Part shown: piece by piece, positions 616 to 16,870 of the stretch
How positions within the stretch are numbered: position 1 is the first letter of the stretch
Layout: every line of letters starts with the position of its first letter
IMG/VR virus record: IMGVR_UViG_3300031787_000001
Coordinates: 124,001-188,000 of that record
Reading direction: 5' to 3' (one strand)
DNA: 64,000 bases
Position numbers and translations under genes: made by a program
The notes under the pieces: generated by a model
What the model saw: only the letters and a program-made list of their open reading frames with translations
Database searches by the model: none
What the model was told of the DNA's origin: nothing

Positions 616-945
616 TTACCTGTGTTTTATGAGTAACTCACCCAACACTTCTATTTTACCAACTAATTTTTGAAATTCAACTTGACCCAAACTCGGATCA
701 TCTGTTTTACATAATTTATCCAATAGTTCTTTATATTCTTTTTTGGATTTTTCAACATCAAATTTACCTTCAGATGCTTTCTTATAATAAGGTAATTTAA
801 CCACAAAATGATGATAAGTTAACATAGAAGAACCACCCTTTTCTTTTGCGGTATTCGCAATCTTTGTAGCACCTTTTAATCTTTTGCCAGAAAATTCCTC
901 AAACTGTTCTTCTTTGGATTCTTCTAATATCTCTAAAAATTTCAT
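616..945 (-). CDS. Hypothetical protein, MKFLEILEE leader
   Basis: ORF track; leader resembles those of 14068 and 61717 ORFs. Confidence 0.75.
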   Translation of the reverse strand: MKFLEILEESKEEQFEEFSGKRLKGATKIANTAKEKGGSSMLTYHHFVVKLPYYKKASEGKFDVEKSKKEYKELLDKLCKTDDPSLGQVEFQKLVGKIEVLGELLIKHR

Positions 946-946
946 A

Positions 947-1282
947 TTATTCTCTCCACATTGGATTTGCGATTATTAATTTATCACCTTCAACACGAGG
1001 AATCTCACCCATATCTTGATTATCGGCAAATTCTATTTGATCGGGATAAAATTTTTGACCATTAAAAACGGTATAATAAGTGTCTTCGTTGTCGTTAGAA
1101 TTGTCTTTACCCATATGACTATAACCTTGTGATCTTAATGCATCTTTAGCCGCATCCTGAGCTGTAGGTTTATTAAAAAATCTACCAAAACGACCGAAAA
1201 ACCCTTCACCTTCATTAATCAAATTATATTTTTTTCTTATTTCATTTTTTTCGGATTCTGTAATTGTAAAACGTTTTCCCAT
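947..1282 (-). CDS. Hypothetical protein, MGKRFTITESE leader
   Basis: Leader nearly identical to 8796..9320; TATTTAT upstream. Confidence 0.8.
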   Translation of the reverse strand: MGKRFTITESEKNEIRKKYNLINEGEGFFGRFGRFFNKPTAQDAAKDALRSQGYSHMGKDNSNDNEDTYYTVFNGQKFYPDQIEFADNQDMGEIPRVEGDKLIIANPMWRE

Positions 1283-1323
1283 TATATTTCTTTTTATATA
1301 AATATCTCTATTATATTTTTAAC

Positions 1324-2064
1324 TTACATCAAAGATTTTGCATGTCCTAAATCAATAACACCAAATTTTTGTGCTTGTTTTAAATAACCACCATTCACAA
1401 AATTATTTGGTGAATTTTTTATCATTCTCTTCCAACCATTATATTGAGTAGTGTAGTCCCATATTTTTTTTGTGTCACCCCATCCCTTTTTATATAACCA
1501 ACCACCAACATTACCACCAGTTCTATCAGCACCATGATGACAATGAATTAATGTATTTCCTTTATCCAACAATTCATTTACTTTATCTTGATCTTTTGTG
1601 GATGATAATTTATAAAATTTACACCCATTTTCTTCACAAACTCTTTTTTCTTCTTTTATGGATAATCCAGAACTATCTCCACCATCACCATTAAATCTTA
1701 CTACATTTTTTATTCCATATTTTAATATAACACCTTTTAGTGCATCTGCCGTAGGTTCTGCGGAACGATAATTGTTATCACCTAAAGGTATTTTATGGAA
1801 ATTTTTTATACTTTTATCGTTTATATCTTCCGAATCTGTCGAGAACGTAGGTCCAACGTATTCTTTACCATAAACCTCTTCATAGGCCTTTCTGGTCATT
1901 GGTCCCATAATACCATCAACACCATCTTTTTTAGGTCCATATTTACCGATATCTTTTTTATGGACATAAACTAATTCTTTTTGTATATCTTCTATACTTT
2001 TATCTTCAACATCGTCAGTTTCTAAAATTAATTTTAGTTGGCGTTCTGTAATTAAAATCTTCAT
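1324..2064 (-). CDS. Leader + peptidoglycan-binding motif + protein tyrosine/dual-specificity phosphatase
   Basis: DGVDGIMGPMT (PG_binding_1-like); IHCHHGADRTG = CX5R catalytic loop. Confidence 0.8.
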   Translation of the reverse strand: MKILITERQLKLILETDDVEDKSIEDIQKELVYVHKKDIGKYGPKKDGVDGIMGPMTRKAYEEVYGKEYVGPTFSTDSEDINDKSIKNFHKIPLGDNNYRSAEPTADALKGVILKYGIKNVVRFNGDGGDSSGLSIKEEKRVCEENGCKFYKLSSTKDQDKVNELLDKGNTLIHCHHGADRTGGNVGGWLYKKGWGDTKKIWDYTTQYNGWKRMIKNSPNNFVNGGYLKQAQKFGVIDLGHAKSLM

Positions 2065-2081
2065 AATATATATAAATATTA

Positions 2082-2603
2082 TTATAAATCTAAACCACCT
2101 TTATCTAATTTTTCAAAATTTTCTAAATCCCCAAAGTTTGGGTCTGATTTTATTTTTTCTTGTTTTGATAGTTTCATTTGATCCAATCTATGTGCATTCA
2201 TATGGTTTTTAACAATGTAATAAATAATTTCTGGATCTCCACCTTTTTCAACAATCCAATCAGAATATTTTTTTACTAATTCAGCAGACACATCTTCATG
2301 ACCATATGCAGTTGGAAAACCGGTTTTAGGGTTTATAGAATGAGTTTCATCCTTACCAATGTCATGAAACAATGCGGCTAAAATTATGTTCATGTTATTT
2401 GGGTAATTCTTAATTGCTCTTTTAACTACCATTATAACATGTTTTAACGTATTGCCTTCGGGATGATAATCAGGTCTTTGTGGTACTTTCCACAGACCAA
2501 AAAAACGATTTTTTATGTCGTCAGGTAACGAATAAATCAATTTTTTTGCATCAACATCACTTTTTATTTCTTCAAACTGTGATTCTGTTATTATAATTTT
2601 CAT
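2082..2603 (-). CDS. HD-domain phosphohydrolase resembling the C-terminal domain of multifunctional CCA enzymes
   Basis: VPQRPDYHPEG..KH, AALFHDIGK, GHE motifs. Confidence 0.8.
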   Translation of the reverse strand: MKIIITESQFEEIKSDVDAKKLIYSLPDDIKNRFFGLWKVPQRPDYHPEGNTLKHVIMVVKRAIKNYPNNMNIILAALFHDIGKDETHSINPKTGFPTAYGHEDVSAELVKKYSDWIVEKGGDPEIIYYIVKNHMNAHRLDQMKLSKQEKIKSDPNFGDLENFEKLDKGGLDL

Positions 2604-2611
2604 ACCAATAA

Positions 2612-3790
2612 TTATATTATTTTTTTGAAATTATCTAATTCAATTTTATTTATCATATCACCCACTTCTTTACCCGGTTTTAAATTCATTTTTTTCATAA
2701 CATCATCTCCACTAACGGTTAAATTAAAATTAACAAAGGCATTTAATAACTTTTTATCAATACCCTCTAAATTACCAAAAGTCATTATTTGATCGTCAGA
2801 TAAATTTGTGTTTTTTTGTATTCTTTTTAATTGAATTACATTATCTAATGACATATTTTTTAAATTAATTAAGAAAGTAATGTCCTTTATCTCATCAACA
2901 CTATATTTTAGATTATTCAATTTTTTTCCGATTGTAGATAGATCATTGTTTTTTAATAATCTTGATATAACTAAAATCGGATCTTTAATTTCTATAAAAT
3001 CTTTTGACACAGATAAACCTCTGAATATTGAATCAAATAAATTATACTTATCAATCAATTGTAAAAAATGTATTGTTGATTTAGATGATATAATTCCCTT
3101 TATAAATTCATCTCTAATCCTTTCTCCCGATATACCATCTATACTTGAATTTCTCTGTAATGATTGATCAACATTATTATCTAAATCTGAACCGAACCTA
3201 CCAGCAAATCTAATTGCTCTAAGTATTCTTAATCTATCTTCATTAAATCTATCGTCAGGGTTACCAACAGTTCTAACAATATCGTTTTTTAAATCCTCAA
3301 CACCGCCAACTAAATCAACAACTTCACCTGTGTCAATATCATAATAAAGAGCATTTATTGTGAAATCCCTTCTTTTCGCATCTGTTTCAATATCTGTAAA
3401 TTCAACTTTATCTGGTCTTCTTTTATCTGACTCTGAATAAGATTCAGATCTAAATGTTGCTATTTCATATTCATCGTTATCTGTAAAAACATTTATAACA
3501 CCGAACGCCTTTCCCGTCGGTAATGTTTTGTAACCTGAATTATTTAATATTGTTTCAACCTCATCGGGTGTTGCATCCGTGGTCAAATCATAATCTTTTG
3601 GTGTTTTACCCAATACCGCATCTCTAACCGCACCACCAACAACAAATAATTTATAGTTATTTTTTTTGAAAATATCTTTAATTTTAATAATGTCTTCAGG
3701 TATTGATATATTGAATTTTATTCTTTCTTCAACCAATAAATCTGAATACATTATTTTATTTAATTGTGATTCAGTTATAACAATTTTCAT
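2612..3790 (-). CDS. cca: Class II tRNA nucleotidyltransferase (CCA-adding enzyme)
   Basis: VGGAVRD, DYD, RRDFTINAL, EDRLRILRAIRF (EDxxR). Confidence 0.9.
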   Translation of the reverse strand: MKIVITESQLNKIMYSDLLVEERIKFNISIPEDIIKIKDIFKKNNYKLFVVGGAVRDAVLGKTPKDYDLTTDATPDEVETILNNSGYKTLPTGKAFGVINVFTDNDEYEIATFRSESYSESDKRRPDKVEFTDIETDAKRRDFTINALYYDIDTGEVVDLVGGVEDLKNDIVRTVGNPDDRFNEDRLRILRAIRFAGRFGSDLDNNVDQSLQRNSSIDGISGERIRDEFIKGIISSKSTIHFLQLIDKYNLFDSIFRGLSVSKDFIEIKDPILVISRLLKNNDLSTIGKKLNNLKYSVDEIKDITFLINLKNMSLDNVIQLKRIQKNTNLSDDQIMTFGNLEGIDKKLLNAFVNFNLTVSGDDVMKKMNLKPGKEVGDMINKIELDNFKKII

Positions 3791-3849
3791 AATATATAAA
3801 TATAAGAAACATTAACCCAACTATAAAATATTTATATAAAAAGGGGTTT

Positions 3850-4218
3850 ATGGAAAATTTATTACCCTTGACATGGTATATTGAATCTCCAATAGATTTT
3901 GAACATAAGGAATATGTTCTATATTCTTATCTACAAAAAGTCGACCACGATTTCCATAATAAAATGTTATCTCCACACCTTTTACATTTAGAAAAATTAA
4001 TAGATGAACTATTAAATTTTGATGCGTCTTTTAACATGATCAAAAAAGATTTTGACAAAAATAGATATGTCTTTTTTGAAAATGTGAAACTGGTGGGTGA
4101 AGACGACAAACTTATTTATGAAATAAGAAATATCGTGGAATTTGCAATCCCACAAGTAGAACCACGAATTAAATTGGGTTATTCAATCTTAAAAAGGAAC
4201 AATCAAATATTATATTAA
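3850..4218 (+). CDS. Hypothetical protein
   Basis: ORF; TATTTATA upstream. Confidence 0.7.
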   Translation: MENLLPLTWYIESPIDFEHKEYVLYSYLQKVDHDFHNKMLSPHLLHLEKLIDELLNFDASFNMIKKDFDKNRYVFFENVKLVGEDDKLIYEIRNIVEFAIPQVEPRIKLGYSILKRNNQILY

Positions 4219-4501
4219 AATAACCCTCTATTCCACTGTTTAGGTGGTATCATTTTACCCATCTCACCATACTGAAATAATAAACGATTAAAGAATTTAA
4301 TAATAGTTTTCATACCAATAAATAGAAAACTATTATTTGAAAAGTATGACAACTTTTGCTCTAAAATATGATGGCCAAACTTATTTTTTTATAAAGATTT
4401 TAATACTTTATTATTTTCTTTTATTCTTTTAGATGTCTTTAAAGTAGATTTTCTACTTTTCATCGGTTTTTGTTTTTTCTTTGCTCTTGCCATGATTTTA
4501 T

Positions 4502-5272
4502 CTATTTATTTAAATCAAAATCTTTTATAAATGAATCGTGTGATTTTTCATATGATTTTAACGTTTCATCTTTCTCATTACTTGTATATTGCCAATTCCA
4601 ATATAATTTATCATTTATTTTAAAACCGTAAAATTCATGAATTTTACGTTGTAAATCAATTACATTTGTTCCATTAAAATTTTGTCCTACACATATCATT
4701 CCACCCTCAATATTTTTTAACAAATTTGATTCACCTAAACTAGCGTGTCTATTTTCCAACCATGTTAATCTTTCAATTAAATTTTGATAAAACATATTTG
4801 CGGAACCCCATCTAACCGAACTTAAAAATATAACACAATCAGATTCAAATAATTCTTTACTTATTTTCCAAAGTTCATCTGATTTATTATTTATAGACGC
4901 CCAACATCTATGATGTCCCGATGGGTTTTTTTCATCATCTTTTAGAACAGATTTTTTAACACCACATGAATTACCATCAGATCTGGACACATTACCTTCA
5001 CATGGAAATATTTTTAATTCAGAAACATCTATAAGTTTTACATTATCCAATTCATCGGCCAAATATTCTGCAAGTATCTTTGATTTAGGTATGTCAATGT
5101 TACTTTTATCCCAATTGAATCTGTTCGAACAACTCAATAATAAAACCTTTTTCTTAGTTTTTAACACCTCCACCGTATCTTTTAGTTTATCTAATCCGTT
5201 TTTTCTGACGTTTTCTTCAGATAACATCATTTTACGAATTCGATTAATTTCCTCTTTTAAAATTTTTTCCAT
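4502..5272 (-). CDS. Flavodoxin-fold NAD(P)H-dependent FMN reductase / iron-sulfur flavoprotein-like protein
   Basis: IDVSELKIFPCEG..C..C, ESDCVIFLSSVRWG, LIERL motifs; EEINRIRKMM leader. Confidence 0.7.
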   Translation of the reverse strand: MEKILKEEINRIRKMMLSEENVRKNGLDKLKDTVEVLKTKKKVLLLSCSNRFNWDKSNIDIPKSKILAEYLADELDNVKLIDVSELKIFPCEGNVSRSDGNSCGVKKSVLKDDEKNPSGHHRCWASINNKSDELWKISKELFESDCVIFLSSVRWGSANMFYQNLIERLTWLENRHASLGESNLLKNIEGGMICVGQNFNGTNVIDLQRKIHEFYGFKINDKLYWNWQYTSNEKDETLKSYEKSHDSFIKDFDLNK

Positions 5273-5293
5273 ATAAATAAATATATCAAAATA

Positions 5294-5698
5294 ATGATAC
5301 TTATTGTTATGGTGTCTCTACTGTTGTTAGTTAAAAATAAAAAATTTTTATTGCTTAAAAGAAGTCCATCCGAGTACAAATATTCGGGATTTTGGGGATT
5401 ACCTGGTGGTTCTGTCGAAAAAAATGAAACCCCGACGGATGCTTTAATTAGAGAAATTGGAGAAGAACTTGGTATCAGTATCCCTAATTTTATATTATTG
5501 AATAAATACGATATGGGTAATAATTTAATAAATGTTTATGTTTATAATTCACCCGAATTTGATGAAAATAAAATTATATTAAATGATGAACACACCGAAT
5601 TTAAATTCTTCTCTTATTATGAAATTAATAATATGAAAGATATCATTCCAACAACAATCAATTTTGTAATTGATTATTTATCTAATCCAAACCTTTAA
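5294..5698 (+). CDS. NUDIX hydrolase
   Basis: Nudix box GGSVEKNETPTDALIREIGEELG. Confidence 0.9.
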   Translation: MILIVMVSLLLLVKNKKFLLLKRSPSEYKYSGFWGLPGGSVEKNETPTDALIREIGEELGISIPNFILLNKYDMGNNLINVYVYNSPEFDENKIILNDEHTEFKFFSYYEINNMKDIIPTTINFVIDYLSNPNL

Positions 5699-6092
5699 CT
5701 TCTTTATCGTACTTTTTAAATCTATTGGGATTTGACATCATTGCACTTTTTGGAAATAAACGTTTTTTACGTGTAAATGCAAAACTTCTACTACGTTCAT
5801 CGATTTCTTCTTCAGAATCCATCATCATTTCGTCCACCGCATTTGTAAATTTATAACACCTATCAGAAATTTTATTTTTATCGTGATCAAACATTGTAAC
5901 AATCACTTCATTGTATTTTACAATCATATCAGGGTGATGATTTTGTTCTTCCGCAATTTCACCTACTTTATTCACGAAATCTAACACATCTTTATAAGAA
6001 TCAAATTCAAATTTTTTACATAATTTACCTTTCACGACTTTCCAATCGGATTTAAGTTTATTCATTTGAGATTCTGTGATTATTATATTCAT
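5682..6092 (-). CDS. Pterin-4-alpha-carbinolamine dehydratase with leader and basic tail
   Basis: AEEQNHHPDM signature. Confidence 0.85.
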   Translation of the reverse strand: MNIIITESQMNKLKSDWKVVKGKLCKKFEFDSYKDVLDFVNKVGEIAEEQNHHPDMIVKYNEVIVTMFDHDKNKISDRCYKFTNAVDEMMMDSEEEIDERSRSFAFTRKKRLFPKSAMMSNPNRFKKYDKEVKGLD

Positions 6093-6122
6093 TCTTTGTT
6101 TTTTTCTATTTGATTTCTCCCC

Positions 6123-6620
6123 CTACGCTTGTATATCACTGTAACTAGATTTACTCGTTATAGTTATAAATGATTTTAATCCATCAACAATATTTCCCCA
6201 AGTTAACCCCCATTCACTATCTAATTCTTTAAATAAATCTTGTTTTTTTTGTTTACTGAATAATCTATCAACCGCACAAAATTCATTTTTGTTTTTTATT
6301 TGTTTTAGTACATTGACGGTATTTGTTGGTTTTGATAAACCTTGTATTTGATTATACAGATTATTAAATAATTGAATATTTCTATTATTATTTAAGTTAA
6401 GTTGATTGTCACCCATTCTTCTACATTCGGTAAACAAATTAAGAACATCTTTTTTATATTCAATATCACCTGTTGTACCATCATCAGAGCCAGGTACATT
6501 TAATCCGGTATTTGATGGGTCAGCTAAAACATCAGCAAGACCAAGTACAGGTTGTTCTTTTATTGTTAATGATTTAATCACTTTTTTTAATTGTGATTCT
6601 GTTATTATTATTTTTTTCAT
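6123..6620 (-). CDS. Leader + possible single annexin-like repeat
   Basis: LYNQIQGL..T..VL..I....F..V...F....DL..EL.SE pattern. Confidence 0.45.
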   Translation of the reverse strand: MKKIIITESQLKKVIKSLTIKEQPVLGLADVLADPSNTGLNVPGSDDGTTGDIEYKKDVLNLFTECRRMGDNQLNLNNNRNIQLFNNLYNQIQGLSKPTNTVNVLKQIKNKNEFCAVDRLFSKQKKQDLFKELDSEWGLTWGNIVDGLKSFITITSKSSYSDIQA

Positions 6621-6623
6621 ATA

Positions 6624-7271
6624 TTATCTCTTATAATAAGTGTCGTATACATCAGAAGTCAATCCGTAATCAATTAGGACTATTCTATTATTTCCAACTA
6701 ACCCATATGATGATAATCTACACAAATCACCCCAAGGTAATTCGTAATTAACCATAAAATCCATCATATTATAAACAAATTCATTTTCCCATATGTCATT
6801 ATAATTCTCTGGTTTTGATACAGTGAAACCAAAATCAACTGAAATACTATTACGATATTTTATTATGTGACAATAATTTTCAAATGTAACACCCACAATA
6901 TTTTTGAAAATTGACGGAGTCACTTTTTTGGCTAATTCCATTTCAACCCATAGGTTGTTTTCATCGTGATCAAATATTTTTGCAACAACATCATTCACAT
7001 AAGAATCATTACCAAAATCAATCTCAGTTTCATTTTGGGCAATACCCTTCTTGTTTTTGGCGAGCTTTAAGACCTTATTGTCATCGATTTTATACACTAT
7101 TCTACTACTACCCGAAGATAGTCTTTGGAGATGTTGATTACAATAATTAACTCTGGCAGAAAACGATGTTAATTTTTTAAATTCCTCAATACTCCAACTA
7201 GTTGGATAATCCTCATCCAAGTCTTTTTGTATTAGATTATTATATTGTGATTCAGTTATGATTATTTTCAT
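6624..7271 (-). CDS. Protein kinase-like fold protein
   Basis: SSGSSRIVY loop, VLK lysine, NETE, GDL, LIDYG. Confidence 0.7.
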   Translation of the reverse strand: MKIIITESQYNNLIQKDLDEDYPTSWSIEEFKKLTSFSARVNYCNQHLQRLSSGSSRIVYKIDDNKVLKLAKNKKGIAQNETEIDFGNDSYVNDVVAKIFDHDENNLWVEMELAKKVTPSIFKNIVGVTFENYCHIIKYRNSISVDFGFTVSKPENYNDIWENEFVYNMMDFMVNYELPWGDLCRLSSYGLVGNNRIVLIDYGLTSDVYDTYYKR

Positions 7272-7281
7272 ATTAAATTAA

Positions 7282-7869
7282 TTAAAAGTCCATACCACCC
7301 CATTCTTTAGCTCTTACATCATAATCATCTCTATCATCATAATCATCTGGTCCATCATAATCATCGTAATCTCTTTCAATTACACCTGATCCACCACAAG
7401 AACTACATCTTGATCCATCATACTGTCCTTCGCCAGTTCCATTACAATTAGAACACATATCATCACCATCTTCCTCATCATTATCGTCTTCGTCCTCATT
7501 TTTTTCATCATATAATTCAGGATTCGGAGCGAGCTCAACTTCACTTTCCATATATTCTTTCGGATATAAATCTATTCCTTCTGATTTCCAATCAATTAAA
7601 TAATATGTATCATTTGGATCATCATTTCCCAAATATTTAACCGTCAGATCGTATGAAGGTTGATCTTTTGCCGCCTCCAAATTTGGGAAAATATTCAAAA
7701 TCTTACCATAGTAACTTGGATCTTCCGATAACGATACGGGATTCATTACAATGTCTCCAACTTTAAAATTTTTATCACCAGATACATTATCTTCCTGAGA
7801 TTCATTTTCATTTAATCCCATCATTTTTTTTATACGGGAAACTTGTTCGTTTAAGTTTTGTTTTTTCAT
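7282..7869 (-). CDS. Acidic protein with DnaJ-type zinc-finger motifs
   Basis: CSNCNGTG and CSSCGGSG; EQVSRIKKMMGLNE leader. Confidence 0.75.
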   Translation of the reverse strand: MKKQNLNEQVSRIKKMMGLNENESQEDNVSGDKNFKVGDIVMNPVSLSEDPSYYGKILNIFPNLEAAKDQPSYDLTVKYLGNDDPNDTYYLIDWKSEGIDLYPKEYMESEVELAPNPELYDEKNEDEDDNDEEDGDDMCSNCNGTGEGQYDGSRCSSCGGSGVIERDYDDYDGPDDYDDRDDYDVRAKEWGGMDF

Positions 7870-7893
7870 CTTATTTGTTTTTAATAAATATTG

Positions 7894-8778
7894 TTAAGGA
7901 ATCATTATTATTGAGTAATCCCTCGTCCCTCCGTCAAATGTACCATCTTTGATTGATTTAGCACCAGGAAAATCATTTAATATTTTATCTCTTGATGGGA
8001 AGACACCTTTAGTTTTATCGTCTCTAACATTTAGTGCCAATCTTAAATAATTGATTTGTGTTTTACCTGGGCCTATTTTTAAAGAATAGTTATTTGTTTT
8101 AGTATCCAAAACAACTTGAACATTATTTAAATCAATTGAACTGCCTTTTGATTTTATTTGAATGTCTTTAATAAATTGACTTAAATCCGTACTTGTTATA
8201 TTAACACCACTATTTTGTTGTTGGTTTCCTTGTTGTGTTTGACCGCCACAATCACTTTGATAATCTCTGTGTTTCCATTGTATCCAATATTCTTCCAATC
8301 CTTCGGGTGTTTTTGTTAATTGACTAACATCCAATTCGTTATTTAATACTACATTTTCTTTTTTTCCTGATGGAATATAATTTAATATTTCACTTTTTCT
8401 TGCATTTAATTCAGGTGTATGATTCCAACCCCCAACATGGGCAAATCCCGTTCTTGCCTCACATTTATCAGAAACACCAACAAATGGAATAACAACAGTA
8501 TAGACAACATTTCCACTACCCATTCCTTTTGTTGTCATTTGTATACCTTTAAAGTCAACTTTGACATATGTTCCTGATCTATATAATTCTTTTAATTTTG
8601 CTGCAACGTATTGTGTGATCGTGTTAGAATACTTATGTGCAACATCACCCGTATTATCAAACTCAGGTCCAACGTATTTTCCCGAACAACCACCCGCACT
8701 ACATACAGGTGTTTCTGCTTGTTCAATCAATAGACCCATCATCTGTTTTATTCTATATGTTTGTTCTTGTAGGTTCAT
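7894..8778 (-). CDS. Hypothetical protein, MNLQEQ..RIKQMMGL leader
   Basis: ORF track. Confidence 0.8.
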   Translation of the reverse strand: MNLQEQTYRIKQMMGLLIEQAETPVCSAGGCSGKYVGPEFDNTGDVAHKYSNTITQYVAAKLKELYRSGTYVKVDFKGIQMTTKGMGSGNVVYTVVIPFVGVSDKCEARTGFAHVGGWNHTPELNARKSEILNYIPSGKKENVVLNNELDVSQLTKTPEGLEEYWIQWKHRDYQSDCGGQTQQGNQQQNSGVNITSTDLSQFIKDIQIKSKGSSIDLNNVQVVLDTKTNNYSLKIGPGKTQINYLRLALNVRDDKTKGVFPSRDKILNDFPGAKSIKDGTFDGGTRDYSIIMIP

Positions 8779-8795
8779 TTTTAACTATATGAAAA

Positions 8796-9320
8796 TTACA
8801 TTTCAAGATCTTTCATATTCATTTTTTTATCAAATGATGTTTGATTTGTTGGGTTACTATCAATTGCAAATAATTCTTCAAAAAATCTTTTTCCTGGTTT
8901 AGCGATATTACCTAAATCTATAACACCGAGAGATGATTTAAAATTTTTTAAATTTGGTATCTCATCTTTTCTAGTTGAAAAAATATTTTTTATTAATGGA
9001 TGATCCACTCTATATGATGCAAAATATGCATTATTGATTGATTTCAATAATTCTAATGGTTCATGTTGTGGACTGAAAGTTATTGTGTAATCTATATTAC
9101 CATTGTTTTTAACAATGTTAATTGTATACATTGCTCCGTTATATGTTACTTGTAACTTATCTGGTGATACACTAACTTTTCCACCCCATTCTTTAATCGA
9201 TTCTAAAAATGAATCCCAGTATCTCGGAGCATTTGTGGTGGATTCCTCTTCTTTAACTAAATTGTACTGTTTTCTGATTTCATTTCTTTCAGATTCAGTA
9301 ATTGTAAAACGTTGTCCCAT
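8796..9320 (-). CDS. Hypothetical protein, MGQRFTITESE leader
   Basis: ORF track. Confidence 0.8.
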   Translation of the reverse strand: MGQRFTITESERNEIRKQYNLVKEEESTTNAPRYWDSFLESIKEWGGKVSVSPDKLQVTYNGAMYTINIVKNNGNIDYTITFSPQHEPLELLKSINNAYFASYRVDHPLIKNIFSTRKDEIPNLKNFKSSLGVIDLGNIAKPGKRFFEELFAIDSNPTNQTSFDKKMNMKDLEM

Positions 9321-9362
9321 AATATTTTGTTTTTAATATAAATATCTTAAAAAAATGAAATA

Positions 9363-9389
9363 AAAAAAACCTCCCGGTTCCGGAGGTTT
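9363..9389 (-). terminator. Intrinsic terminator; related copies at ~10447-10471 and ~12286-12312
   Basis: A-run + CCTCCCGG..GGAGG hairpin. Confidence 0.7.
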
Positions 9390-9421
9390 AAAAAATAAAA
9401 TCGATTAATAATATTAATTTT

Positions 9422-9694
9422 TTAAGAATTTTCAACTTCGATCTCGGTATCTGTTCCCAAATCTTTTTCTCTGGTGATATCCATTTCCATAAGTTCATCA
9501 TACAAACTATCTGCCCAACTTTCGGATCCGGGTAATGGTTTCATATCTGAAATGTTTTCCTTAATATATTCAGATATTTCTTCATCATCCTTACCCGATA
9601 ATTCAGGATAATTGTCGGTATCAATTTCTACAGAGTCACGAACAACCATTGTTCGTTGATATTCGATTAGTCTTACATTAATTTTCTTTCCCAT
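9422..9694 (-). CDS. Acidic hypothetical protein (no leader)
   Basis: ORF with own terminator. Confidence 0.7.
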   Translation of the reverse strand: MGKKINVRLIEYQRTMVVRDSVEIDTDNYPELSGKDDEEISEYIKENISDMKPLPGSESWADSLYDELMEMDITREKDLGTDTEIEVENS

Positions 9695-9742
9695 AAAATG
9701 TTTTTTGTAAAATATACAAAAAATAATTTAAATAATAAAATT

Positions 9743-10429
9743 TTACAGTTTTGGTATGTTTTGTGGTTTTTTAACAAACGTTGATGATGAGGTATTTTGT
9801 GGTTTATCTAAAACATCATTTTTAACAAGTACTTTATTTTGTTTATTTAACGCTTCTTTATTAACATCGTCGTTAATTAAATTCAATAAAGATTTTAAGT
9901 GATCTCCCTTTGTTAAAAAGGTCATAAATTTATTAAAGTTTTCACGATCATCTTTATTGACAAAATTATCACTGGCCCATTTTAAAAACCCCGATTTTCC
10001 TTGTGAAGTTAAAACGGTAATACCTGATTTATGTATTTTACTTAAAACATTTGCAATATTGGGTTTGATACCCAAAAAATTCATTGCTCTTACCGTTCTT
10101 CCTAATGAAAGTGGACTTGTTAGTAAACCAATTATTCCTTCAGTGTATTTTCCTCTTTTTAAATCTCTATATGCCATCATTGATCCATAACCTGCCGCCA
10201 GAAAACTACCGGCCAAAGGAATTTTCCAAAGTCCAAATTGTACAATTGTATCGATAATTAATGGAAATTCATCTCTTATATCGGCCAAGGCGCCTATGGG
10301 ATCATGTGATCTACCGCCAAACATTGCCGGACCACCTAACATTATATTTTGTTCACCAATAATTGATTTAACATTACCTCTTTCGGACTCCAAAAGATAA
10401 TAAAATCTATTTTTATATTGATCGTTCAT
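9743..10429 (-). CDS. Hypothetical protein with hydrophobic segments
   Basis: ORF; TATTTATA upstream. Confidence 0.75.
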   Translation of the reverse strand: MNDQYKNRFYYLLESERGNVKSIIGEQNIMLGGPAMFGGRSHDPIGALADIRDEFPLIIDTIVQFGLWKIPLAGSFLAAGYGSMMAYRDLKRGKYTEGIIGLLTSPLSLGRTVRAMNFLGIKPNIANVLSKIHKSGITVLTSQGKSGFLKWASDNFVNKDDRENFNKFMTFLTKGDHLKSLLNLINDDVNKEALNKQNKVLVKNDVLDKPQNTSSSTFVKKPQNIPKL

Positions 10430-10495
10430 ATCATTATAAATATAACAAAAAAACCTCCCGGCGGGAGGTTTTAAAATTTAAATCGATTAAATGTG

Positions 10496-10828
10496 TTATC
10501 TAATAAAGAAAGATAATACAGATAATCCACCGATTAATAATGGAAACCATGTTTTCTTTCCACCCATAAGTGATAGGTGTAAAGCCACCGCACCACTCAT
10601 TACAGATACGATGATTAACAAACCGTAAAGGGATGTTGCGGGGAAAATAAATAACAATACTCCGAGTAATTCTAAGATACCGATAGGTACTCTGTAGTTT
10701 TGGAGTTTCATGAATTGAAAATTCTGAACCGATTCATTTGATTTAATAATTTTGTCTGTACCACTTTTAGATAGGGTCCAAACTGCGGGGATACTAAGAA
10801 TCCAACCGATAATTGATAATACTGTCAT
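10496..10828 (-). CDS. DoxX-like membrane protein
   Basis: About four TM helices; IGILELLGVLLFIFP, GAVALHL. Confidence 0.7.
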   Translation of the reverse strand: MTVLSIIGWILSIPAVWTLSKSGTDKIIKSNESVQNFQFMKLQNYRVPIGILELLGVLLFIFPATSLYGLLIIVSVMSGAVALHLSLMGGKKTWFPLLIGGLSVLSFFIR

Positions 10829-10912
10829 AATATATTTGTTTTATAAAGTACAATATAAACAAAATAATTGAAATAAAAAAAACCCCTCACATTGGAGGGG
10901 TTAATATTTTTT

Positions 10913-11854
10913 TTAGAAATTTATTTTAATAGGTTGACTTGATACAGTGTTTATTAATTGTGATGCCGCCTGTTGATCATTTGCAACACTTGCATTTTGT
11001 GTGTTGTAATATGTATCTCCGTTCTTGAAAACGTGTTTATTTTGTATATGTGCGTTTGCCCAATTAATTAAAAGATCATTATCTAAATTAATCATTTTTT
11101 GTCGATCCACCCCTTTATATTCTAAATAAACTAACGCCTTTACCCTATCGGTTATTTCAGGTGGTGCTTGTTGTGGTTGAGTTTGTTGAGTTTGAGTTTG
11201 TTGTGGTTTAGTTTGTTGTGTTTGTTGGCCACCCGAAGAGTTTTGACCTTTATATTTACCAAAAACCCATGCGGTGATTTTACCTCCTTCCCCATGGTAA
11301 CACCAATGTCCACACTTCCCTTTTTCATTAAAGATATCAGCGTGTCCCGATATTCCCGGCCATTTGGGGTTATTGGTTATGACAAAAATTCCTTTGTTAC
11401 CTTTTAGATATTTTTCAATATTTTCTGGAGTGTTATCTATTGAATCAATTGTAGGTTCCCCAAAAGTTCTTGTTAAATAAATTAAACTATTTTTAGCACC
11501 TGTTGTAATATCTTTACCTTTAGTGGGATACGTAATACCTTTAAACGTCCAATCTTTTTCACTTCTAAATGCACGACCACATTCTACACCCATTTTAATT
11601 AATGCCAAACATAATCTGGTTGCACATGCATTTTGGAATGTTTGTGGTGATTGTTTATATTGGTTTGGGAATATACCAGGAAAAATTTCTTCCTCATCCG
11701 CATTAGGAAAATTATTCCATAAGGCATTAAAATCCATACTTGTTACCACATTTTCAGGATTTACTGAAGCCTCGTTTAATACTTTCCTTGTTACTCCTTC
11801 GTATAGACCTCTTATTCTTGTTTTTTCTTCTTCTGTAATTATAAATTTTCCCAT
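10913..11854 (-). CDS. Leader + Tae4-family peptidoglycan amidase + Q/T-rich linker
   Basis: NACATRL (Cys) and GHADIFN (His); start reassigned to MGKFIITEEEK at 11854. Confidence 0.75.
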   Translation of the reverse strand: MGKFIITEEEKTRIRGLYEGVTRKVLNEASVNPENVVTSMDFNALWNNFPNADEEEIFPGIFPNQYKQSPQTFQNACATRLCLALIKMGVECGRAFRSEKDWTFKGITYPTKGKDITTGAKNSLIYLTRTFGEPTIDSIDNTPENIEKYLKGNKGIFVITNNPKWPGISGHADIFNEKGKCGHWCYHGEGGKITAWVFGKYKGQNSSGGQQTQQTKPQQTQTQQTQPQQAPPEITDRVKALVYLEYKGVDRQKMINLDNDLLINWANAHIQNKHVFKNGDTYYNTQNASVANDQQAASQLINTVSSQPIKINF

Positions 11855-11867
11855 ATTGAATTTTTTT

Positions 11868-12260
11868 TTAGGTTGGATAATTGGTTCTAATTTCACTAAA
11901 ATTATACAAAACCAATTTACCGTTTTCACATTTCCATCTACACAATTGATATTTCATTGATGCAGGAAGTAACCTTGCATTATATTTTCCTTCACTGTTA
12001 ACATAAACATCTGTTTTATATAACGTCACATCTTTACCATTATATTTTCCCGACCAACTATCAGGAACATTACGACCTCCTTTTAAAGGTGAGTAATGTC
12101 CTTTTTCAAATTGAAATCCTTTTAAACAAGATATATCATCTTTTTTAGGTACGATAGTAGGTTTTATAGTTGATGTGTCTCTACCCATATTTTGTTCACT
12201 GATCACATTTTTAATCAAGTCGATCAATTCACTTTCTGTTAATCTAACAACTTTCTTCAT
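11868..12260 (-). CDS. Hypothetical protein, MKKVVRLTESEL leader
   Basis: ORF track. Confidence 0.8.
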   Translation of the reverse strand: MKKVVRLTESELIDLIKNVISEQNMGRDTSTIKPTIVPKKDDISCLKGFQFEKGHYSPLKGGRNVPDSWSGKYNGKDVTLYKTDVYVNSEGKYNARLLPASMKYQLCRWKCENGKLVLYNFSEIRTNYPT

Positions 12261-12311
12261 ATTTTATTTTCTATATAAATATAACAAAAAAACACTCCCG
12301 GTTCCGGAGGT

Positions 12312-12554
12312 TTAACTTTTTCTCATCTCTCTATATTTTAGATATACACCGACAAAGAAACCCAATGATGAAGAATATTTTAAACATTCTTCCATAGTCG
12401 AACCCATCAACATAAGAATAATGAATGAGATGACAGTTGTACCGAAAACTTTCCAAAAGACACTAACCAATAAATAAAACAAACCGAATGGTAATAATAG
12501 AATAACAAAAAGAATACTGAGAATATAACCAAGTATTTTCGTTATTATTTTCAT
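12312..12554 (-). CDS. Small membrane protein
   Basis: Hydrophobic ORF followed by terminator. Confidence 0.65.
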   Translation of the reverse strand: MKIITKILGYILSILFVILLLPFGLFYLLVSVFWKVFGTTVISFIILMLMGSTMEECLKYSSSLGFFVGVYLKYREMRKS

Positions 12555-12622
12555 ATCATTATAAAATCATAATTTAATTTGATTATTTCTTTAATCCTTT
12601 GTATGTTTTCTTGTAGATTCAT
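12551..12622 (-). pseudogene. Leader-only mini-ORF MNLQENIQRIKEIIKLNYDFIMI
   Basis: First 13 residues identical to 12625..13503 leader; ATGA overlap with next gene. Confidence 0.7.
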
Positions 12623-12624
12623 TT

Positions 12625-13503
12625 TTATTTCACAATTTCTTTGAATTTATCCAAATAAACAGTTCTTTCGGAATCGACATTTATTAATTTAGTTGTTGGT
12701 GTCATATATTCGTCTTTGACTTTAATATAATATACACCATTGTCCACTACTCCGAGTTCATTCAAAAAGTAATTTATAAATTCATCATCTAAACCATTAC
12801 TTTTTAATAATCCAATCAATCCATCTTTTGTTAACTCAGTAGTTGGGTCTCCAATTGAAATATCAGGTTTTTGTTTTGTCACCTCATACTTAGTTAAATA
12901 TTGTTTCAAAACTTCTTTTGGGTCTCTTGGTTCCGTTAGTTTTCTAGTCTCAACATTTTTTAATAAAATATAAATTGGAGCGTGAAGTAAAACATTTTTA
13001 ATCTTTTCGTTTGGTATATATTGTAAAATACCATTTCCGATATCATCTATTATAATTTTTTTATGTCCACCATATTTTACTTCTTGAGCCATATACCAAT
13101 TTCTATAATCAAGTCCTTTTATTAAATCTTTATTATGTGGGTGCAAAGGGAAACCTACTGTTGTGTCTCCTCTTTTCTCTCCGAACCCTCCTTTTCTTTT
13201 TTCCGCCATTTGTTTATGAAATTCTTCACCTGATTGTGGATTAGGTCCATCACCAGAGTGGTCGTATTTGATTCTGTTTTGAATACATTGATCATCATCA
13301 CATCCAAACATATCACTATCAATTTGAACCCACTGATTGGGGTCTGTTGATTTAAAAAATGGAACCGCATTTAAAATTTTAGCAGTTTGTGATTTTCCCG
13401 CAGATGACGTTCCATCAATCAAAATGATTTCTTTTTCTTGGGTTTCTTCCGTAAGAAGTCCCATTATTTCTTTAATTCTTTGTATGTTTTCTTGTAGGTT
13501 CAT
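12625..13503 (-). CDS. P-loop kinase (chloramphenicol phosphotransferase-like)
   Basis: IILIDGTSSAGKS Walker A; IIIDD. Confidence 0.7.
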   Translation of the reverse strand: MNLQENIQRIKEIMGLLTEETQEKEIILIDGTSSAGKSQTAKILNAVPFFKSTDPNQWVQIDSDMFGCDDDQCIQNRIKYDHSGDGPNPQSGEEFHKQMAEKRKGGFGEKRGDTTVGFPLHPHNKDLIKGLDYRNWYMAQEVKYGGHKKIIIDDIGNGILQYIPNEKIKNVLLHAPIYILLKNVETRKLTEPRDPKEVLKQYLTKYEVTKQKPDISIGDPTTELTKDGLIGLLKSNGLDDEFINYFLNELGVVDNGVYYIKVKDEYMTPTTKLINVDSERTVYLDKFKEIVK

Positions 13504-14022
13504 TTAAGATTTATTAATTAACTCATTAATCAATTCATTGATTTTTTTTAAAGGTTCGTCAGTTCTTAAATCCAAATACATTTCATTTGGATTATCTTTA
13601 TTTGCATCAACAAAACCTAACTTTTTATAATACTCATGAAGTTTTGGTCCACTGAATTCGTCCCTTTTTAATGTAATGATGTTTATTTTATTTCTTTTTG
13701 AGTGTTCAAAAATATTTTTTAATAATATCAATCCAATACCTTTAATTGCATCATTTTTTCTATCTATTCTTTCTAAATAGAATTCTTTTGTTTTCCATGG
13801 AAGTTCAAGTTCGATACCCATTATTTCATCTTCACCGAAATATTTAACTTCCGCAGTTGCATCACCCAAAGAATAATATATGGTTGTCACATCACTTATT
13901 GCTCCTTTATTTACTTTTATATCTGCGGGAGTATTGTTCAATTCTTCTAATGTGGTACTTTCATTTTCTGAAATTAACCCCATCATTTCTTTAATCCTTT
14001 GTATGTTTTCTTGTAGGTTCAT
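13504..14022 (-). CDS. GNAT-like acetyltransferase
   Basis: KGIGLILL and YYKKLGF motifs. Confidence 0.7.
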   Translation of the reverse strand: MNLQENIQRIKEMMGLISENESTTLEELNNTPADIKVNKGAISDVTTIYYSLGDATAEVKYFGEDEIMGIELELPWKTKEFYLERIDRKNDAIKGIGLILLKNIFEHSKRNKINIITLKRDEFSGPKLHEYYKKLGFVDANKDNPNEMYLDLRTDEPLKKINELINELINKS

Positions 14023-14066
14023 ATTACTATGTTTATTTCTTGTTCGGTAATTATAAGTTTTCTCAT
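14019..14066 (-). pseudogene. Leader-only mini-ORF MRKLIITEQEINIVI
   Basis: Matches IITE leader; ATGA overlap with 14022 start. Confidence 0.6.
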
Positions 14067-14067
14067 A

Positions 14068-15117
14068 TTATATGTAATTATTTTCTCTCAACATAAAATG
14101 ACCTAATTCAAATGTTAAAATAGATTTAATATTTTTTTCTTCCCAGTATGGTATTCTTATTAATTGTATGTTGTTATCTTTACAATAATTTGTTTTAATT
14201 AAGTCTCTTTCTTGTAATGACTTAAATCCTTCTTCTCCACCAAAATACTCAATAGGTTCAAAATGTTGGATACCGTCATATTCTATACACACCTCAGTAC
14301 CATCATTTTTTATTACATGAGCATCAAATTTTAGTTTATCACAATATCTTTTACCACCATAACCAAAGCAACCATCGAAAGATTTTTGTTTATTTACTTT
14401 ATAACCTAATTCGTTTAATACACTTATCACCTGAGATTCGCCCTTACTTTCTTTTTTACCACATATAGGGCAACCTGTTTTTCCTTTTTTTAGGTTATGT
14501 ATGTTTATACCTTCTTGAGCAAAAACAAAAGGTGTTGTGTGTTTTGTACATATAACATCTTTAACAAATAAAGTTTTATTTTTTAAACCATCCGTCTTAT
14601 AAAAAAAATTTTCAGGTTTAAATGATAATCCTCTCTCCGCGGGAAAAGAATTAATCCAATCTCTCACATTTATTTTTACTGCAGATATAATTCTATCTTT
14701 ACCACATTTTCTACAACCGTTCCCCCTTATTTTTAAATCTTTTACATTGATGTTATTTGATATACCATGTTCCTCACCATTTTCATCTGTTTTATGACAT
14801 TTTATACCATCAATAAATCTTCTACCGTTTATTAATCTATATTTTACATTGGAAAAATCTAATTCAGGAAATTGTTTAATTAATTCTTGGGTTACCACAT
14901 CGTCATCTTTTTTTTTAGGGGAGATTCTTAACAAATATTTCGTAATATCACCCCATGTATTTGAATCGTAGTTTCTATAAATGTATGTTTTTATGCCTGA
15001 ATATTTAGGATCTTTTCTAAAATCATCCATAGACGAAAATTTAGAAACGTAATCTTTAACATCACTTAAAGTCCATATTTTTTTTTCAATTTCATATAAT
15101 ATTTCTAATAATTTCAT
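14068..15117 (-). CDS. Putative free-standing endonuclease (Zn-ribbon repeats + Vsr/DUF559-like PD-(D/E)xK domain)
   Basis: GCRKC, GCPICG, SKGE, KFD..IEYDGIQHF, IRIPYW. Confidence 0.75.
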   Translation of the reverse strand: MKLLEILYEIEKKIWTLSDVKDYVSKFSSMDDFRKDPKYSGIKTYIYRNYDSNTWGDITKYLLRISPKKKDDDVVTQELIKQFPELDFSNVKYRLINGRRFIDGIKCHKTDENGEEHGISNNINVKDLKIRGNGCRKCGKDRIISAVKINVRDWINSFPAERGLSFKPENFFYKTDGLKNKTLFVKDVICTKHTTPFVFAQEGINIHNLKKGKTGCPICGKKESKGESQVISVLNELGYKVNKQKSFDGCFGYGGKRYCDKLKFDAHVIKNDGTEVCIEYDGIQHFEPIEYFGGEEGFKSLQERDLIKTNYCKDNNIQLIRIPYWEEKNIKSILTFELGHFMLRENNYI

Positions 15118-15168
15118 ATTATCATAAATATTCTGAAAAATTTCCAGAAATTTTTTTTTTCAGTTTTA
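15112..15168. repeat. 57-bp direct repeat, copy 1
   Basis: Identical to 16603-16658 except for T-run length. Confidence 0.9.
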
Positions 15169-16608
15169 TCGATTAAAGTCCAATTTTAGGATTTTTAAGA
15201 ATTGATCAAGTTTATCATTAATGTTTTTTGTACCTATTTTTTCTAATTTTTGGTTTAAGTTATTTATTTTGGTATAGAGTGTTGGATTTGATAATCTTGC
15301 AAGACCTGATTTAAATTCTATAGAAGAGGTTATTTGACTTGGATTATGTTTATAGTTATTTATTTCTTTTTCATAATTTTTTATAATAATACTAACCACT
15401 GAGTTATTGTTTCTTTTTATAAAGTCTTTGATATTTTTAATGATTTCATTATTTTCTATTGGTTTTGTTACTATACCATATATAACATCCATTTTAGATA
15501 ATTCTGTTTCCATTAATTTTTGTATGTTATCATACATTGGGTCAATGATATCTTTAGGTAATTTTTTAAACACATTTATTCCGAATGTACTGATTAAGAT
15601 TGAAGTTAAAAAATCGGGGTCATATACCGATAAGAATTTTTTTAATACATCGTATCTTTTATTTATTACTGATCCCCTTATTATGAATTTAACTTCATCT
15701 AAATTATTTGAATTTGTCTTTATTAATTCTATTATTTCATCAGATGGTTTATTGAATATATTTTTATCTGATCTAATATTTTCTTTATTTGTTATTTTAC
15801 TATATTCTATCATCCATTCTCTAATAAAGTTTTTAAAGTCATTATTAAATTCACCATAAAAATGATAAGCATTTCCAAATTCACAAACACTTGATTCTAA
15901 AAATCTACTTATTGGGTCTTTTATGTTCCAGTCTCCCCTTTTTATAAGATAAAAGACTAATAGTCCATTTTGGACAGTATTAATTATTACTCGACCAGAA
16001 CCTTCACCGACATCACCAAATCCGGCTGATGGTATTCCCGTTTGTAATATATTGGTATATTGTGTTAAGTTTTCACAAGATGTTATTTTCGGTTTTGATG
16101 ACATTTCGGCAATATCATGTGAGTGTCTTGAAATTACAACATATAATTTATCCTCACCTTTATATTCTTTAGTTAGTGCACCTAAAAAATCAGTATAATT
16201 TTTTAAAAGTGTATTGTCATTATCATTTAATACTTTGGTTATTTTTATTTCTTGTCCGTTTCTTTTATTTTTTGCGGTATTTTTATTAAAATCAACAATT
16301 GAGTAACCTAATTCTTCTAAACTTGATGATATTTGATTTTTTAATTTATCATCTAATTTAATGTCTATTTTTAATTTTGGTGTATGTTTGGTTGGTGTAA
16401 TTTGTTCACCAGTTTGTAGATCATAGTATAAACGATAGACATTTTTACCAAATATTTCTGTTAATTTTTCTTCATAATCTGATTTTAATTGTTTTGATCT
16501 AATTTGTTTAGATAGGTTAAGTGAAATATATTCATTAATTAAATTAAAATTAGATAACGTATTTTTAATAATATTTTTAAGTTGCGATTCTTTAATTAAA
16601 ATTTTCAT
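15166..16608 (-). CDS. Hypothetical protein, MKILIKESQL leader
   Basis: 480-aa ORF. Confidence 0.8.
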   Translation of the reverse strand: MKILIKESQLKNIIKNTLSNFNLINEYISLNLSKQIRSKQLKSDYEEKLTEIFGKNVYRLYYDLQTGEQITPTKHTPKLKIDIKLDDKLKNQISSSLEELGYSIVDFNKNTAKNKRNGQEIKITKVLNDNDNTLLKNYTDFLGALTKEYKGEDKLYVVISRHSHDIAEMSSKPKITSCENLTQYTNILQTGIPSAGFGDVGEGSGRVIINTVQNGLLVFYLIKRGDWNIKDPISRFLESSVCEFGNAYHFYGEFNNDFKNFIREWMIEYSKITNKENIRSDKNIFNKPSDEIIELIKTNSNNLDEVKFIIRGSVINKRYDVLKKFLSVYDPDFLTSILISTFGINVFKKLPKDIIDPMYDNIQKLMETELSKMDVIYGIVTKPIENNEIIKNIKDFIKRNNNSVVSIIIKNYEKEINNYKHNPSQITSSIEFKSGLARLSNPTLYTKINNLNQKLEKIGTKNINDKLDQFLKILKLDFNR

Positions 16609-16658
16609 ATTATCATAAATATTCTGAAAAATTTCCAGAAATTTTTTTTTCAGTTTTA
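16603..16658. repeat. 56-bp direct repeat, copy 2
   Basis: tttcatattatcataaatattctgaaaaatttccagaaa-Tn-cagtttta. Confidence 0.9.
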
Positions 16659-16714
16659 CCCCTATTGATCCGATTTTCAGATTTTTTCCGGAAAAATTTC
16701 TGTTACGGCATTGT

Positions 16715-16867: not shown

Positions 16868-16870
16868 TAT

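Follow-up and report, generated by a model that had tools for sequence, protein, structure and literature searches.

Positions 616-16608 of a 64-kb window of viral DNA hold 22 tightly packed minus-strand genes, 18 of which begin with short leader peptides fused to unrelated proteins. The leaders are probably propeptides, similar in function to the capsid-targeting sequence (CTS) of bacteriophage T4, by which the cargo would be loaded into the phage head, freed there by the prohead protease and injected with the DNA. The window, meaning the whole stretch analysed, was taken from IMGVR_UViG_3300031787_000001, a contig of 286,785 bp found in IMG/VR and JGI alike, and its position 1 corresponds to contig position 124001. 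The phage is T4-related (T4 superfamily), with a probable host among the Bacteroidota. In each cassette of the array an otherwise ordinary enzyme or small protein is preceded by an N-terminal leader of 13-22 aa. A portable capsid-loading tag had been proposed in an earlier reading of this DNA, hereafter called the original prediction.

Leader peptides mark a local gene array

When the first 32 residues of the array proteins were aligned, one N-terminal motif of about 20 aa was found to be common to 16 minus-strand genes in 947-16608, with the consensus h-h-[IL]-[TQK]-E-[SQE]-[QE]-h-x-x-[IL]-[KR]-x-x-[MY]-x-L and an E/N-rich stretch thereafter. A hidden Markov model (HMM) of 21 columns matched 16 proteins, in every case within residues 1-23, and had no other match in the window. 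The start codons of the matched genes lie at 1282, 2064, 2603, 3790, 5272, 6092, 6620, 7271, 7869, 8778, 9320, 11854, 12260, 13503, 14022 and 16608. Across 191 kb of the same genome one further clear match and one weak match were found. The model was built from array sequences and the test is to that extent circular, but the clustering of the matches and their strict N-terminal position are not. The leader-tagged genes are a genuine local array, and their number agrees with the earlier estimate of about 20.

A second leader type, MKxLEILxE, is separate from this ITES/RIK motif and is carried by the genes at 616-945 and 14068-15117. The orthologue of the former in another phage (L036) begins with MKIIITESQLKKLNLEE in its place, which indicates that the two leader types are interchangeable. 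Five leader classes had originally been distinguished; four of these, all of the ITES/RIK type, align as one motif, and with MKxLEILxE kept apart the scheme collapses to two or three. The isolated genes at 48204 and 61717, which had been judged to look alike, both carry an N-terminal [LI]-x-E, but neither matched the leader HMM. The leaders are amphipathic and charged, and lack the hydrophobic core of at least 10 residues after a basic N-terminus that is expected of a Sec or lipoprotein signal. Lipoprotein signals found elsewhere in the window (for example at 27442 and 28815) are unlike them.

The leader is portable across unrelated proteins

A degenerate DNA pattern for the leader MK(I/V)IITESQ (class A) was found in at least 120 IMG/VR stretches, on contigs of 4-322 kb. 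All 142 of the 142 matches listed open a reading frame, and the leader is therefore not a chance occurrence. Among the matches listed, 125 complete open reading frames (ORFs) fell into at least 54 cargo clusters without mutual similarity. The pattern MNLQE..RIK..MG (class C) gave 81 stretches and 94 complete ORFs with 36 unrelated cargo clusters; these ORFs are frequently in tandem and frequently on contigs that also bear class-A leaders. Few of the cargoes are recognised by Pfam: a sigma-70 factor, lysozyme, SET, RNase_T, DHH, pterin-4a-carbinolamine dehydratase, HD and the CCA enzyme. The fusion of an MNIIITESQ-type leader to the dehydratase, seen in the array, recurs in another phage (L101). 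All synonymous codons are used in the leaders, in proportions close to those of the gene bodies, so that selection appears to act on the amino acids and not on the DNA or RNA. The portability originally proposed is thus borne out by at least 90 unrelated cargo families (54 plus 36), and orthologues exchange leaders or have none.

A word-seeded protein search with leader residues 1-40 returned the query alone, the method being unsuited to so short a motif. The leader strings were not found in print, and no paper describing such a leader family was found in the literature.

Leader-bearing contigs of more than 200 kb contain T4-like sheath and tube genes. In the tail module of four related phages (L110, L093, L137 and L103), a slot between genes for 170-aa and 345-aa proteins upstream of the sheath is occupied by a different MKIIITESQ-tagged gene in each phage, with products of 90, 137, 148 plus 101, and 501 aa. 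When 80 tail-module loci were collected with a T4-like sheath from leader-bearing contigs, the contig of the window was not among them, and no protein in common with about 150 kb of the window phage was found.

Leaders end in a prohead-protease motif

The T4 prohead protease gp21 recognises L/I-x-E and cuts after the Glu (PMC9026906); internal proteins of T4 bear the CTS as an N-terminal propeptide of 10 aa (PMC9026906; PMC3012670). The T4 N-termini in NC_000866 read MELITE.. for Alt, ..STITE|A for IPI, MKTYQEFIAE|A for IPII and IPIII, and ..LLIE for gp21. Counts of genes with an N-terminal [LI]-x-E in the window phage are 20 of 22 for the array, 34 of 50 for late-box genes and 7 of 27 for early-box genes (100 of 257 overall). 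Class-C conservation stops exactly at the Glu of an [LIV]-x-E, which falls at residue 18-20 in 34 of 36 families, compared with about 7% by chance.

The CCA-adding enzyme gave the clearest series of orthologues. Its 120 closest homologues (60-100% identity) carry 54 distinct N-terminal extensions. Six are leaderless and begin within a few residues of the junction, and 46 of the 48 leaders end in [LIVM]-x-E, 0 or 1 residue before the domain start R-I-K/P-F. The middle residue of the motif varies freely. The dialects include MKIIITESQ..LLVEE, MIIKEYIKRKLRTMLTE, MKNEIKQILREGLMME, MKTFIKEQLRRFILME and a class-C leader. The earlier observation that most leaders end in L/I-x-E accordingly holds for the array, for class C and for the CCA leaders, with an exact site that is ambiguous in class A.

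In the tail or neck module of three leader-bearing relatives, a protein (L222 3596-6331, L237 4630-6171 and L103 9134-10672) has an N-terminal extension ending in L-L-T-E. The region that follows resembles, by eye, the start of a superoxide dismutase, and this protein may be another candidate packaged enzyme.

The same genome encodes a T4-type head module

At 60-70 kb of the same contig (L312) lies a head module with a T4-type large terminase, portal (Portal_T4, 3e-76), prohead protease (L312 17874-18557; Peptidase_S77, 1.4e-22) and acidic scaffold (L312 18638-19924). The protease matched T4 gp21 in the PDB (5JBL, 1.7e-12). The His of ELNHP and the Ser residues of SSRG, which we take, on the alignment and not on a structure, to be the catalytic residues, are aligned and invariant across the four proteases compared, T4 gp21 included. 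The N-terminal 'ILIE' of the phage protease aligns with the LIE-9 site of T4 gp21.

In 80 related head modules the protease, the scaffold, the post-portal protein, two other proteins and the one encoded upstream of the terminase have all retained an N-terminal [LI]-x-E. The terminase-upstream protein reads ..N[LI]xE|MAMDFD with a variable middle residue, and in some phages its gene begins at MAM. The post-portal protein has K-L-T-E-S, matching the LTES/ITES of the leaders. In a second leader-bearing lineage (L139, a 64-kb contig), Peptidase_S77 and a Gp23-type capsid protein occur in the 22 kb read around the leader.

The genome also encodes a ClpP-family protein (CLP_protease, L307 1925-2599), a ClpC-like ATPase with two AAA domains (L309 4368-6383) and a sigma-70-family factor (L307 3331-4146). 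The ClpP-like gene was considered as a head protease and rejected: it adjoins SbcC and the sigma factor and has no late box, the Clp ATPase lies elsewhere, and a true S77 protease is present.

The array shares a promoter-like box with structural and lysis genes

Many array cassettes have a late-type box, TATTTATA or (A)TATTTAT(A/G), 7-24 nt upstream. It is also found ahead of the terminase, portal, protease and scaffold genes, three tail-fibre-like operons and a holin-endolysin cassette, and ahead of the terminase and portal genes of Flavobacterium phage immuto (NC_055915), the closest cultured relative. A different, early-type element, (TT)GTATATTTG followed by AACAATTAAAA, stands just upstream of small genes in the plus-strand block at 17.8-47 kb (for example at window 19097, 19891, 20202, 23430 and 30437). 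The GTATATTTG box has 29 plus-strand copies at 17.8-42.5 kb and none in the array. This element presumably corresponds to the Bacteroidota -7 box TAnnTTTG, a fit that points to a Bacteroidota host. The array therefore appears, from its upstream sequences, to belong to the structural and lysis promoter class, and late timing would follow. Early expression together with untagged genes, which had been named as a result that would count against a capsid role, is not indicated at the promoter level: the head, tail-fibre and lysis box is present and the early box absent.

Between the last early-type gene and the first array cassette lies a GC-richer non-coding region (16640-16920) with two terminator-like hairpins (16899-16876 and 16755-16741), no Rfam match and no tRNA. 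Two paralogues of about 175 aa, at 16928-17473 (-) and 23462-23989 (+), share ..ELL(E/I)ILM..DK(S/P)TF..IVSKTKVRMNK..NPY.DKV.; each is downstream of an early-type box, one per strand, and the pair brackets the start of the early block.

Cargo domains

The domains that had been listed for the fused proteins fared unequally (Table 1). Pfam matches are significant for the CCA enzyme, HD, pterin-4a-carbinolamine dehydratase and Tae4. For the PTP-like cargo the Pfam score is weak, yet the HCxxGxxR signature is present in the sequence. The FMN_red, P-loop (CPT) and GNAT assignments are sub-threshold, and the kinase label is based on phrog_4301 and on the depositors' annotation of homologues in cultured jumbo phages. 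The gene at 14068-15117 had been called an endonuclease, a label for which Pfam gives no support.

An AlphaFold2 model of the CCA enzyme (mean predicted local distance difference test score 90.6) is confident from residue 21 onwards, and residues 1-20 score about 50-58 and form a short helix only. The leader of this enzyme is thus modelled as a floppy, detachable appendage. Domain homologues from cultured phages begin after the leader. For the kinase-like protein at 6624-7271 the alignment with its cultured jumbo phage homologues begins only at residue 23 or 48.

Cassettes are bounded by repeats and terminator-promoter composites

Hairpins at 9389-9367, 10472-10450, 10902-10881 and about 12315-12290 (-) lie between cassettes, each with a late-type box directly after it. 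These terminator-promoter composites form repeat family D3. Promoter cassettes and leader DNA recur as near-identical repeats of 55-105 nt, and a 105-nt repeat pairs the region of the 947-1282 gene with 9243-9347. The leader-only ORF at 12555-12623, which belongs to repeat family D2 as the third copy of class-C leader DNA, is a recombination scar at which the cargo has been replaced. The array resembles the hyperplastic regions of T4-like phages, in which composite terminator/promoter elements (PeSLs) mediate cassette exchange (PMC4122927).

Table 1. Leader-tagged genes, untagged array genes and isolated candidates in the 64-kb window
Positions	Strand	Feature	Evidence
616-945	-	Second leader type, MKFLEILEESKEEQ, with small cargo	Orthologue in L036 with MKIIITESQLKKLNLEE
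947-1282	-	Leader MGKRFTITESEKNEIRKKYNLINE with 111-aa cargo without known domain	HMM E=2e-7, residues 3-22; late-type box 1304
1324-2064	-	Leader MKILITERQLKLILE with PTP-like phosphatase (HCHHGADRTG)	HMM; Y_phosphatase3 0.007; late-type box 2078
2082-2603	-	Leader MKIIITESQFEEIK with HD phosphohydrolase	HMM; Pfam HD 9.4e-10
2612-3790	-	Leader MKIVITESQLNKIMYSDLLVEE with CCA-adding enzyme	PolyA_pol 2e-40; late-type box 3802
4502-5272	-	Leader MEKILKEEINRIRKMMLSEE with flavodoxin-like/FMN_red domain (weak)	HMM; FMN_red 8.5e-4; late-type box 5279
5682-6092	-	Leader MNIIITESQ merging into start of pterin-4a-carbinolamine dehydratase	Pterin_4a 2.5e-18 from residue 8
6123-6620	-	Leader MKKIIITESQLKKVIKSLTIKE with cargo without identified domain	HMM
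6624-7271	-	Leader MKIIITESQYNNLIQKDLDED with kinase-like domain	phrog_4301
7282-7869	-	Leader MKKQNLNEQVSRIKKMMGLNEN with acidic, Cys-rich cargo	HMM; TATTTAT upstream
7894-8778	-	Class-C leader MNLQEQTYRIKQMMGLLIEQ with 294-aa cargo without identified domain	HMM; in class-C scan
8796-9320	-	Leader MGQRFTITESERNEIRKQYNLVKEEE with cargo without identified domain	HMM; late-type box 9344; terminator 9389-9367 immediately upstream
9422-10828	-	Array genes outside the HMM family: 9422-9694, 9743-10429 and membrane protein 10496-10828	No HMM match; hydrophobic N-termini
10913-11854	-	Leader MGKFIITEEEKTRIRGLYEG with Tae4-type peptidoglycan amidase, Q-rich linker and C-terminal domain	Tae4 2e-12; HMM
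11868-12260	-	Leader MKKVVRLTESELIDLIKNVISEQ with 130-aa cargo	HMM; late-type box 12281
12312-12554	-	Fourth array gene without these leaders: membrane protein	No HMM match
12555-12623	-	Leader-only mini-ORF of 23 codons (MNLQENIQRIKEIIKLNYDFIMI, then stop)	Upstream of membrane-protein gene 12312-12554
12625-13503	-	Class-C leader MNLQENIQRIKEIMGLLTEE with P-loop kinase-like domain (GTSSAGKS)	HMM domain score 12.4, residues 1-17; CPT 0.0097; orthologue family in class-C scan
13504-14022	-	Class-C leader MNLQENIQRIKEMMGLISEN with GNAT-like domain (weak)	HMM; Acetyltransf_7 0.03
14068-15117	-	Second leader type, MKLLEILYE, with 349-aa Cys-rich cargo	Late-type box 15130; no Pfam match
15166-16608	-	Leader MKILIKESQLKNIIKN with 480-aa cargo without identified domain; first array gene	HMM; late-type box 16621 inside repeated promoter cassette
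48204-49034	+	Isolated weak candidate (MCMTRLKMYDILRESE)	TATTTATG box overlapping start codon; N-terminal [LI]-x-E; no HMM or Pfam match
61717-62541	+	Isolated candidate, second leader type (MKLLKTVYDILLLEY)	Late-type TATTTAT box upstream; N-terminal [LI]-x-E; no HMM match

Genome context and relatives

No phage in GenBank matched the window at the DNA level, and neither tRNA genes nor Rfam families were found in it. Outside the window, a walk along the contig by exact-protein look-ups gave tail-fibre, lysis, sugar-modification, replication and Clp genes. A T4 Rnl1-type RNA ligase adjoins an AAA_33 kinase on the same contig (L309 6813-8308); with the tagged CCA and HD genes they look like a set for tRNA repair. 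GDP-mannose 4,6-dehydratase-like and GDP-fucose synthase-like genes at window 57313-59177 (-), and a large island of glycosyltransferase and methyltransferase genes at contig 208-217 kb (L304, L305), possibly serve in the modification of sugars on the virion or the host surface. At about 220 kb of the contig (L306 12462-13697) a virion structural protein of 411 aa is encoded whose identity to proteins from marine T4-like cyanophages and from the Puniceispirillum podophage HMO-2011 is 60-67%, which suggests horizontal transfer between phages of different host phyla.

In immuto, two adjacent proteins encoded directly upstream of the terminase (L390 17631-18931; NC_055915 117631-118931) share the N-terminal motif M..NF(N/D)L(R/K).FL(T/V)ENKL. 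This motif is possibly another leader dialect, here from a phage that can be grown in culture.

Discussion

The portability of the leader, the [LIVM]-x-E at its junction, the S77 protease and head module in the same genome and the shared late-type box make capsid targeting the most economical reading of the array, and every expectation of that idea that can be put to sequence appears to hold. The process may be pictured as follows. The cassettes would be expressed late from the TATTTATA box that they have in common with head, tail-fibre and lysis genes. The leader, as a flexible amphipathic helix, would bind the scaffolding core of the assembling prohead by analogy with the T4 CTS, and Peptidase_S77 would then cut after the junction [LIVM]-x-E and release the mature enzyme inside the head. 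Ejected along with the DNA, the cargo would enter the next host and could act before phage gene expression; candidate roles are tRNA repair (the CCA enzyme and HD protein), cutting of the cell wall (Tae4) and, for the phosphatase, kinase-like and GNAT-like proteins, the modification of host proteins. Recombination, with the conserved leader DNA and the terminator-promoter composites as its sites, would bring in new cargo, as the repeats, the leader-only scar and the exchange of leaders among orthologues suggest.

Several observations weigh against capsid loading. The array leaders have no detectable homology to the T4 CTS (MKTYQEFIAE), and the likeness is one of pattern only (M-K-x-h...E, with [LI]-x-E); their membership with the T4 CTS would be one of function and analogy and not of sequence family. 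All steps of the proposed mechanism beyond transcription likewise rest on analogy. In class A the invariant stretch MKIIITESQ-h-x-x-L extends beyond the first I-T-E, a second [LI]-x-E at residues 13-15 occurs in only 15 of 54 families and some leaders run into R-R-R helices, so that the class-A cut site is uncertain. The excess of [LI]-x-E in the phage scaffold is modest (15 observed, 9.9 expected, p ~0.05; for T4 gp22 the figures are 16 and 5.7). The cargo shows no bias in isoelectric point, and pterin-4a-carbinolamine dehydratase, a flavodoxin-like protein and a CCA enzyme are without precedent as packaged cargo. Immuto has an S77 head module, and no ITESQ-type leader was found in the first 150 kb of its 160 kb. 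The phage's own ClpC/ClpP-like pair could also read N-terminal tags.

Other explanations were weighed against the same evidence. The leader might be an uncleaved docking helix for a partner outside the capsid, such as a host factor, a membrane, a chaperone or the late transcription or translation machinery. The AlphaFold2 prediction of a short free helix, class-A conservation that exceeds any single cut site, the continuation of many leaders into further helices and the want of homology to the T4 CTS are all compatible with docking. It nevertheless seems unlikely, as it leaves unexplained the near-invariant junction [LIVM]-x-E with its free middle residue across dialects, the same N-terminal motif on head-module proteins and the leaderless orthologues that start right at the junction. 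An even less probable account takes the shared 5' end as a by-product of cassette shuffling, in which promoter, start region and first codons travel together, favoured by recombination there and by efficient initiation of translation where the host lacks Shine-Dalgarno pairing, and the peptide has no targeting role. It would predict leaders and promoter cassettes that recur with nearly the same DNA, the scar at 12555-12623 and the composites between cassettes, as in the PeSL shuffling of T4-like phages (PMC4122927). Against it, the synonymous sites of the leader are free at background usage while its amino acids stay the same through at least 54 families and in numerous phages, tail-fibre and lysis genes with the same promoter box do without a leader, and the start codon is followed by the conserved junction Glu only after 15-20 codons.

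There is also a slim chance that the leader serves the ClpC/ClpP-like protease as a degron or adaptor tag at the N-terminus, which would limit the activity of the enzymes in time. The ClpP-family protein and two-AAA Clp ATPase are encoded in the same genome, and a VGF tripeptide at residue 535 of the ATPase may be a ClpP-docking loop. The Clp genes, however, lie among recombination and transcription genes and have no late box; the junction motif fits gp21 specificity and no known Clp tag; and the predicted late co-expression with head genes suits loading over disposal. In the L139 lineage, moreover, the leader occurs with a T4-type head module in the 22 kb read, with Clp genes possible in the remainder of its contig.

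Should the leader prove to be a capsid-loading propeptide, the co-injected proteome of uncultured phages could be listed by a simple rule: the genome encodes an S77 protease, and the protein starts with an amphipathic leader that has [LIVM]-x-E after it. About 100 new candidate effectors of host takeover or anti-defence would result, mostly without known domain. The T4 CTS principle, so far a matter of a few small internal proteins in coliphages, would then apply to environmental phages, probably those of Bacteroidota, as a general means of delivery, and natural leader/protease pairs would be at hand for loading foreign proteins into the capsids of such phages. The CCA orthologues with exchanged leaders form a test set for the co-evolution of leader, scaffold and protease. 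A bolder proposition, which we rate at somewhat below an even chance, is that a large uncultured T4-superfamily clade, probably on Bacteroidota and with contigs of more than 200 kb among its members, uses a modular and evolvable capsid-loading code of leader dialects and an S77 cut site to co-inject dozens of enzymes, among them tRNA-repair enzymes, kinase-like proteins, phosphatases, wall hydrolases and even sigma factors. Effector delivery would in that case be as broad as the repertoires of bacterial secretion systems, and its cargo readable from sequence.

Comparison with known systems

Encapsulin cargo-loading peptides also direct unrelated enzymes, by a short terminal peptide, into an HK97-fold shell. 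They are usually C-terminal and uncleaved, and the shell contains no DNA. Encapsulins are a functional analogue only; no encapsulin-type shell gene was seen, and no search for one was made.

In the giant phages phiKZ, 201phi2-1 and SPN3US many proteins are loaded into the head, and a gp21-related protease removes N-terminal propeptides after Glu; identical N-termini have been noted on diverged paralogues (PMC5694885). These propeptides are mostly longer than 100 aa and have the motif S/A/G-x-E (PMC5694885, PMC9026906). The array leaders show neither feature: they are of T4 size, 13-22 aa long, and have L/I/V/M two residues before the Glu, and the protease of their genome scores directly as Peptidase_S77. 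With the PeSL regions of T4-like phages the array shares variable cassettes separated by terminator/promoter composites, here hairpin-plus-box composites with repeated promoter cassettes. It differs in that PeSLs carry early promoters, whereas the array box is of the late type common to head and tail genes, and in that the conserved coding DNA of the leader is added as a second recombination target.

The nearest parallel is the T4 CTS, carried by IPI-III and Alt and by the polymorphic internal protein loci of T-even phages. The array leaders, at 13-22 aa, exceed the CTS in length, and there are several dialects of them. One 16-kb array alone has at least 18 tagged genes, and more lie elsewhere, compared with about 4-8 in T4. 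The cargo consists of recognisable enzymes, whereas that of T4 consists of small basic proteins. The phages that bear the leaders are uncultured, their hosts are probably Bacteroidota, and some of their contigs reach 200-320 kb. In both systems a short N-terminal leader ending in L/I-x-E is borne by unrelated proteins, a gp20/gp21/gp22-type head module is encoded in the genome, and the cargo is hypervariable while the leader alone is conserved.

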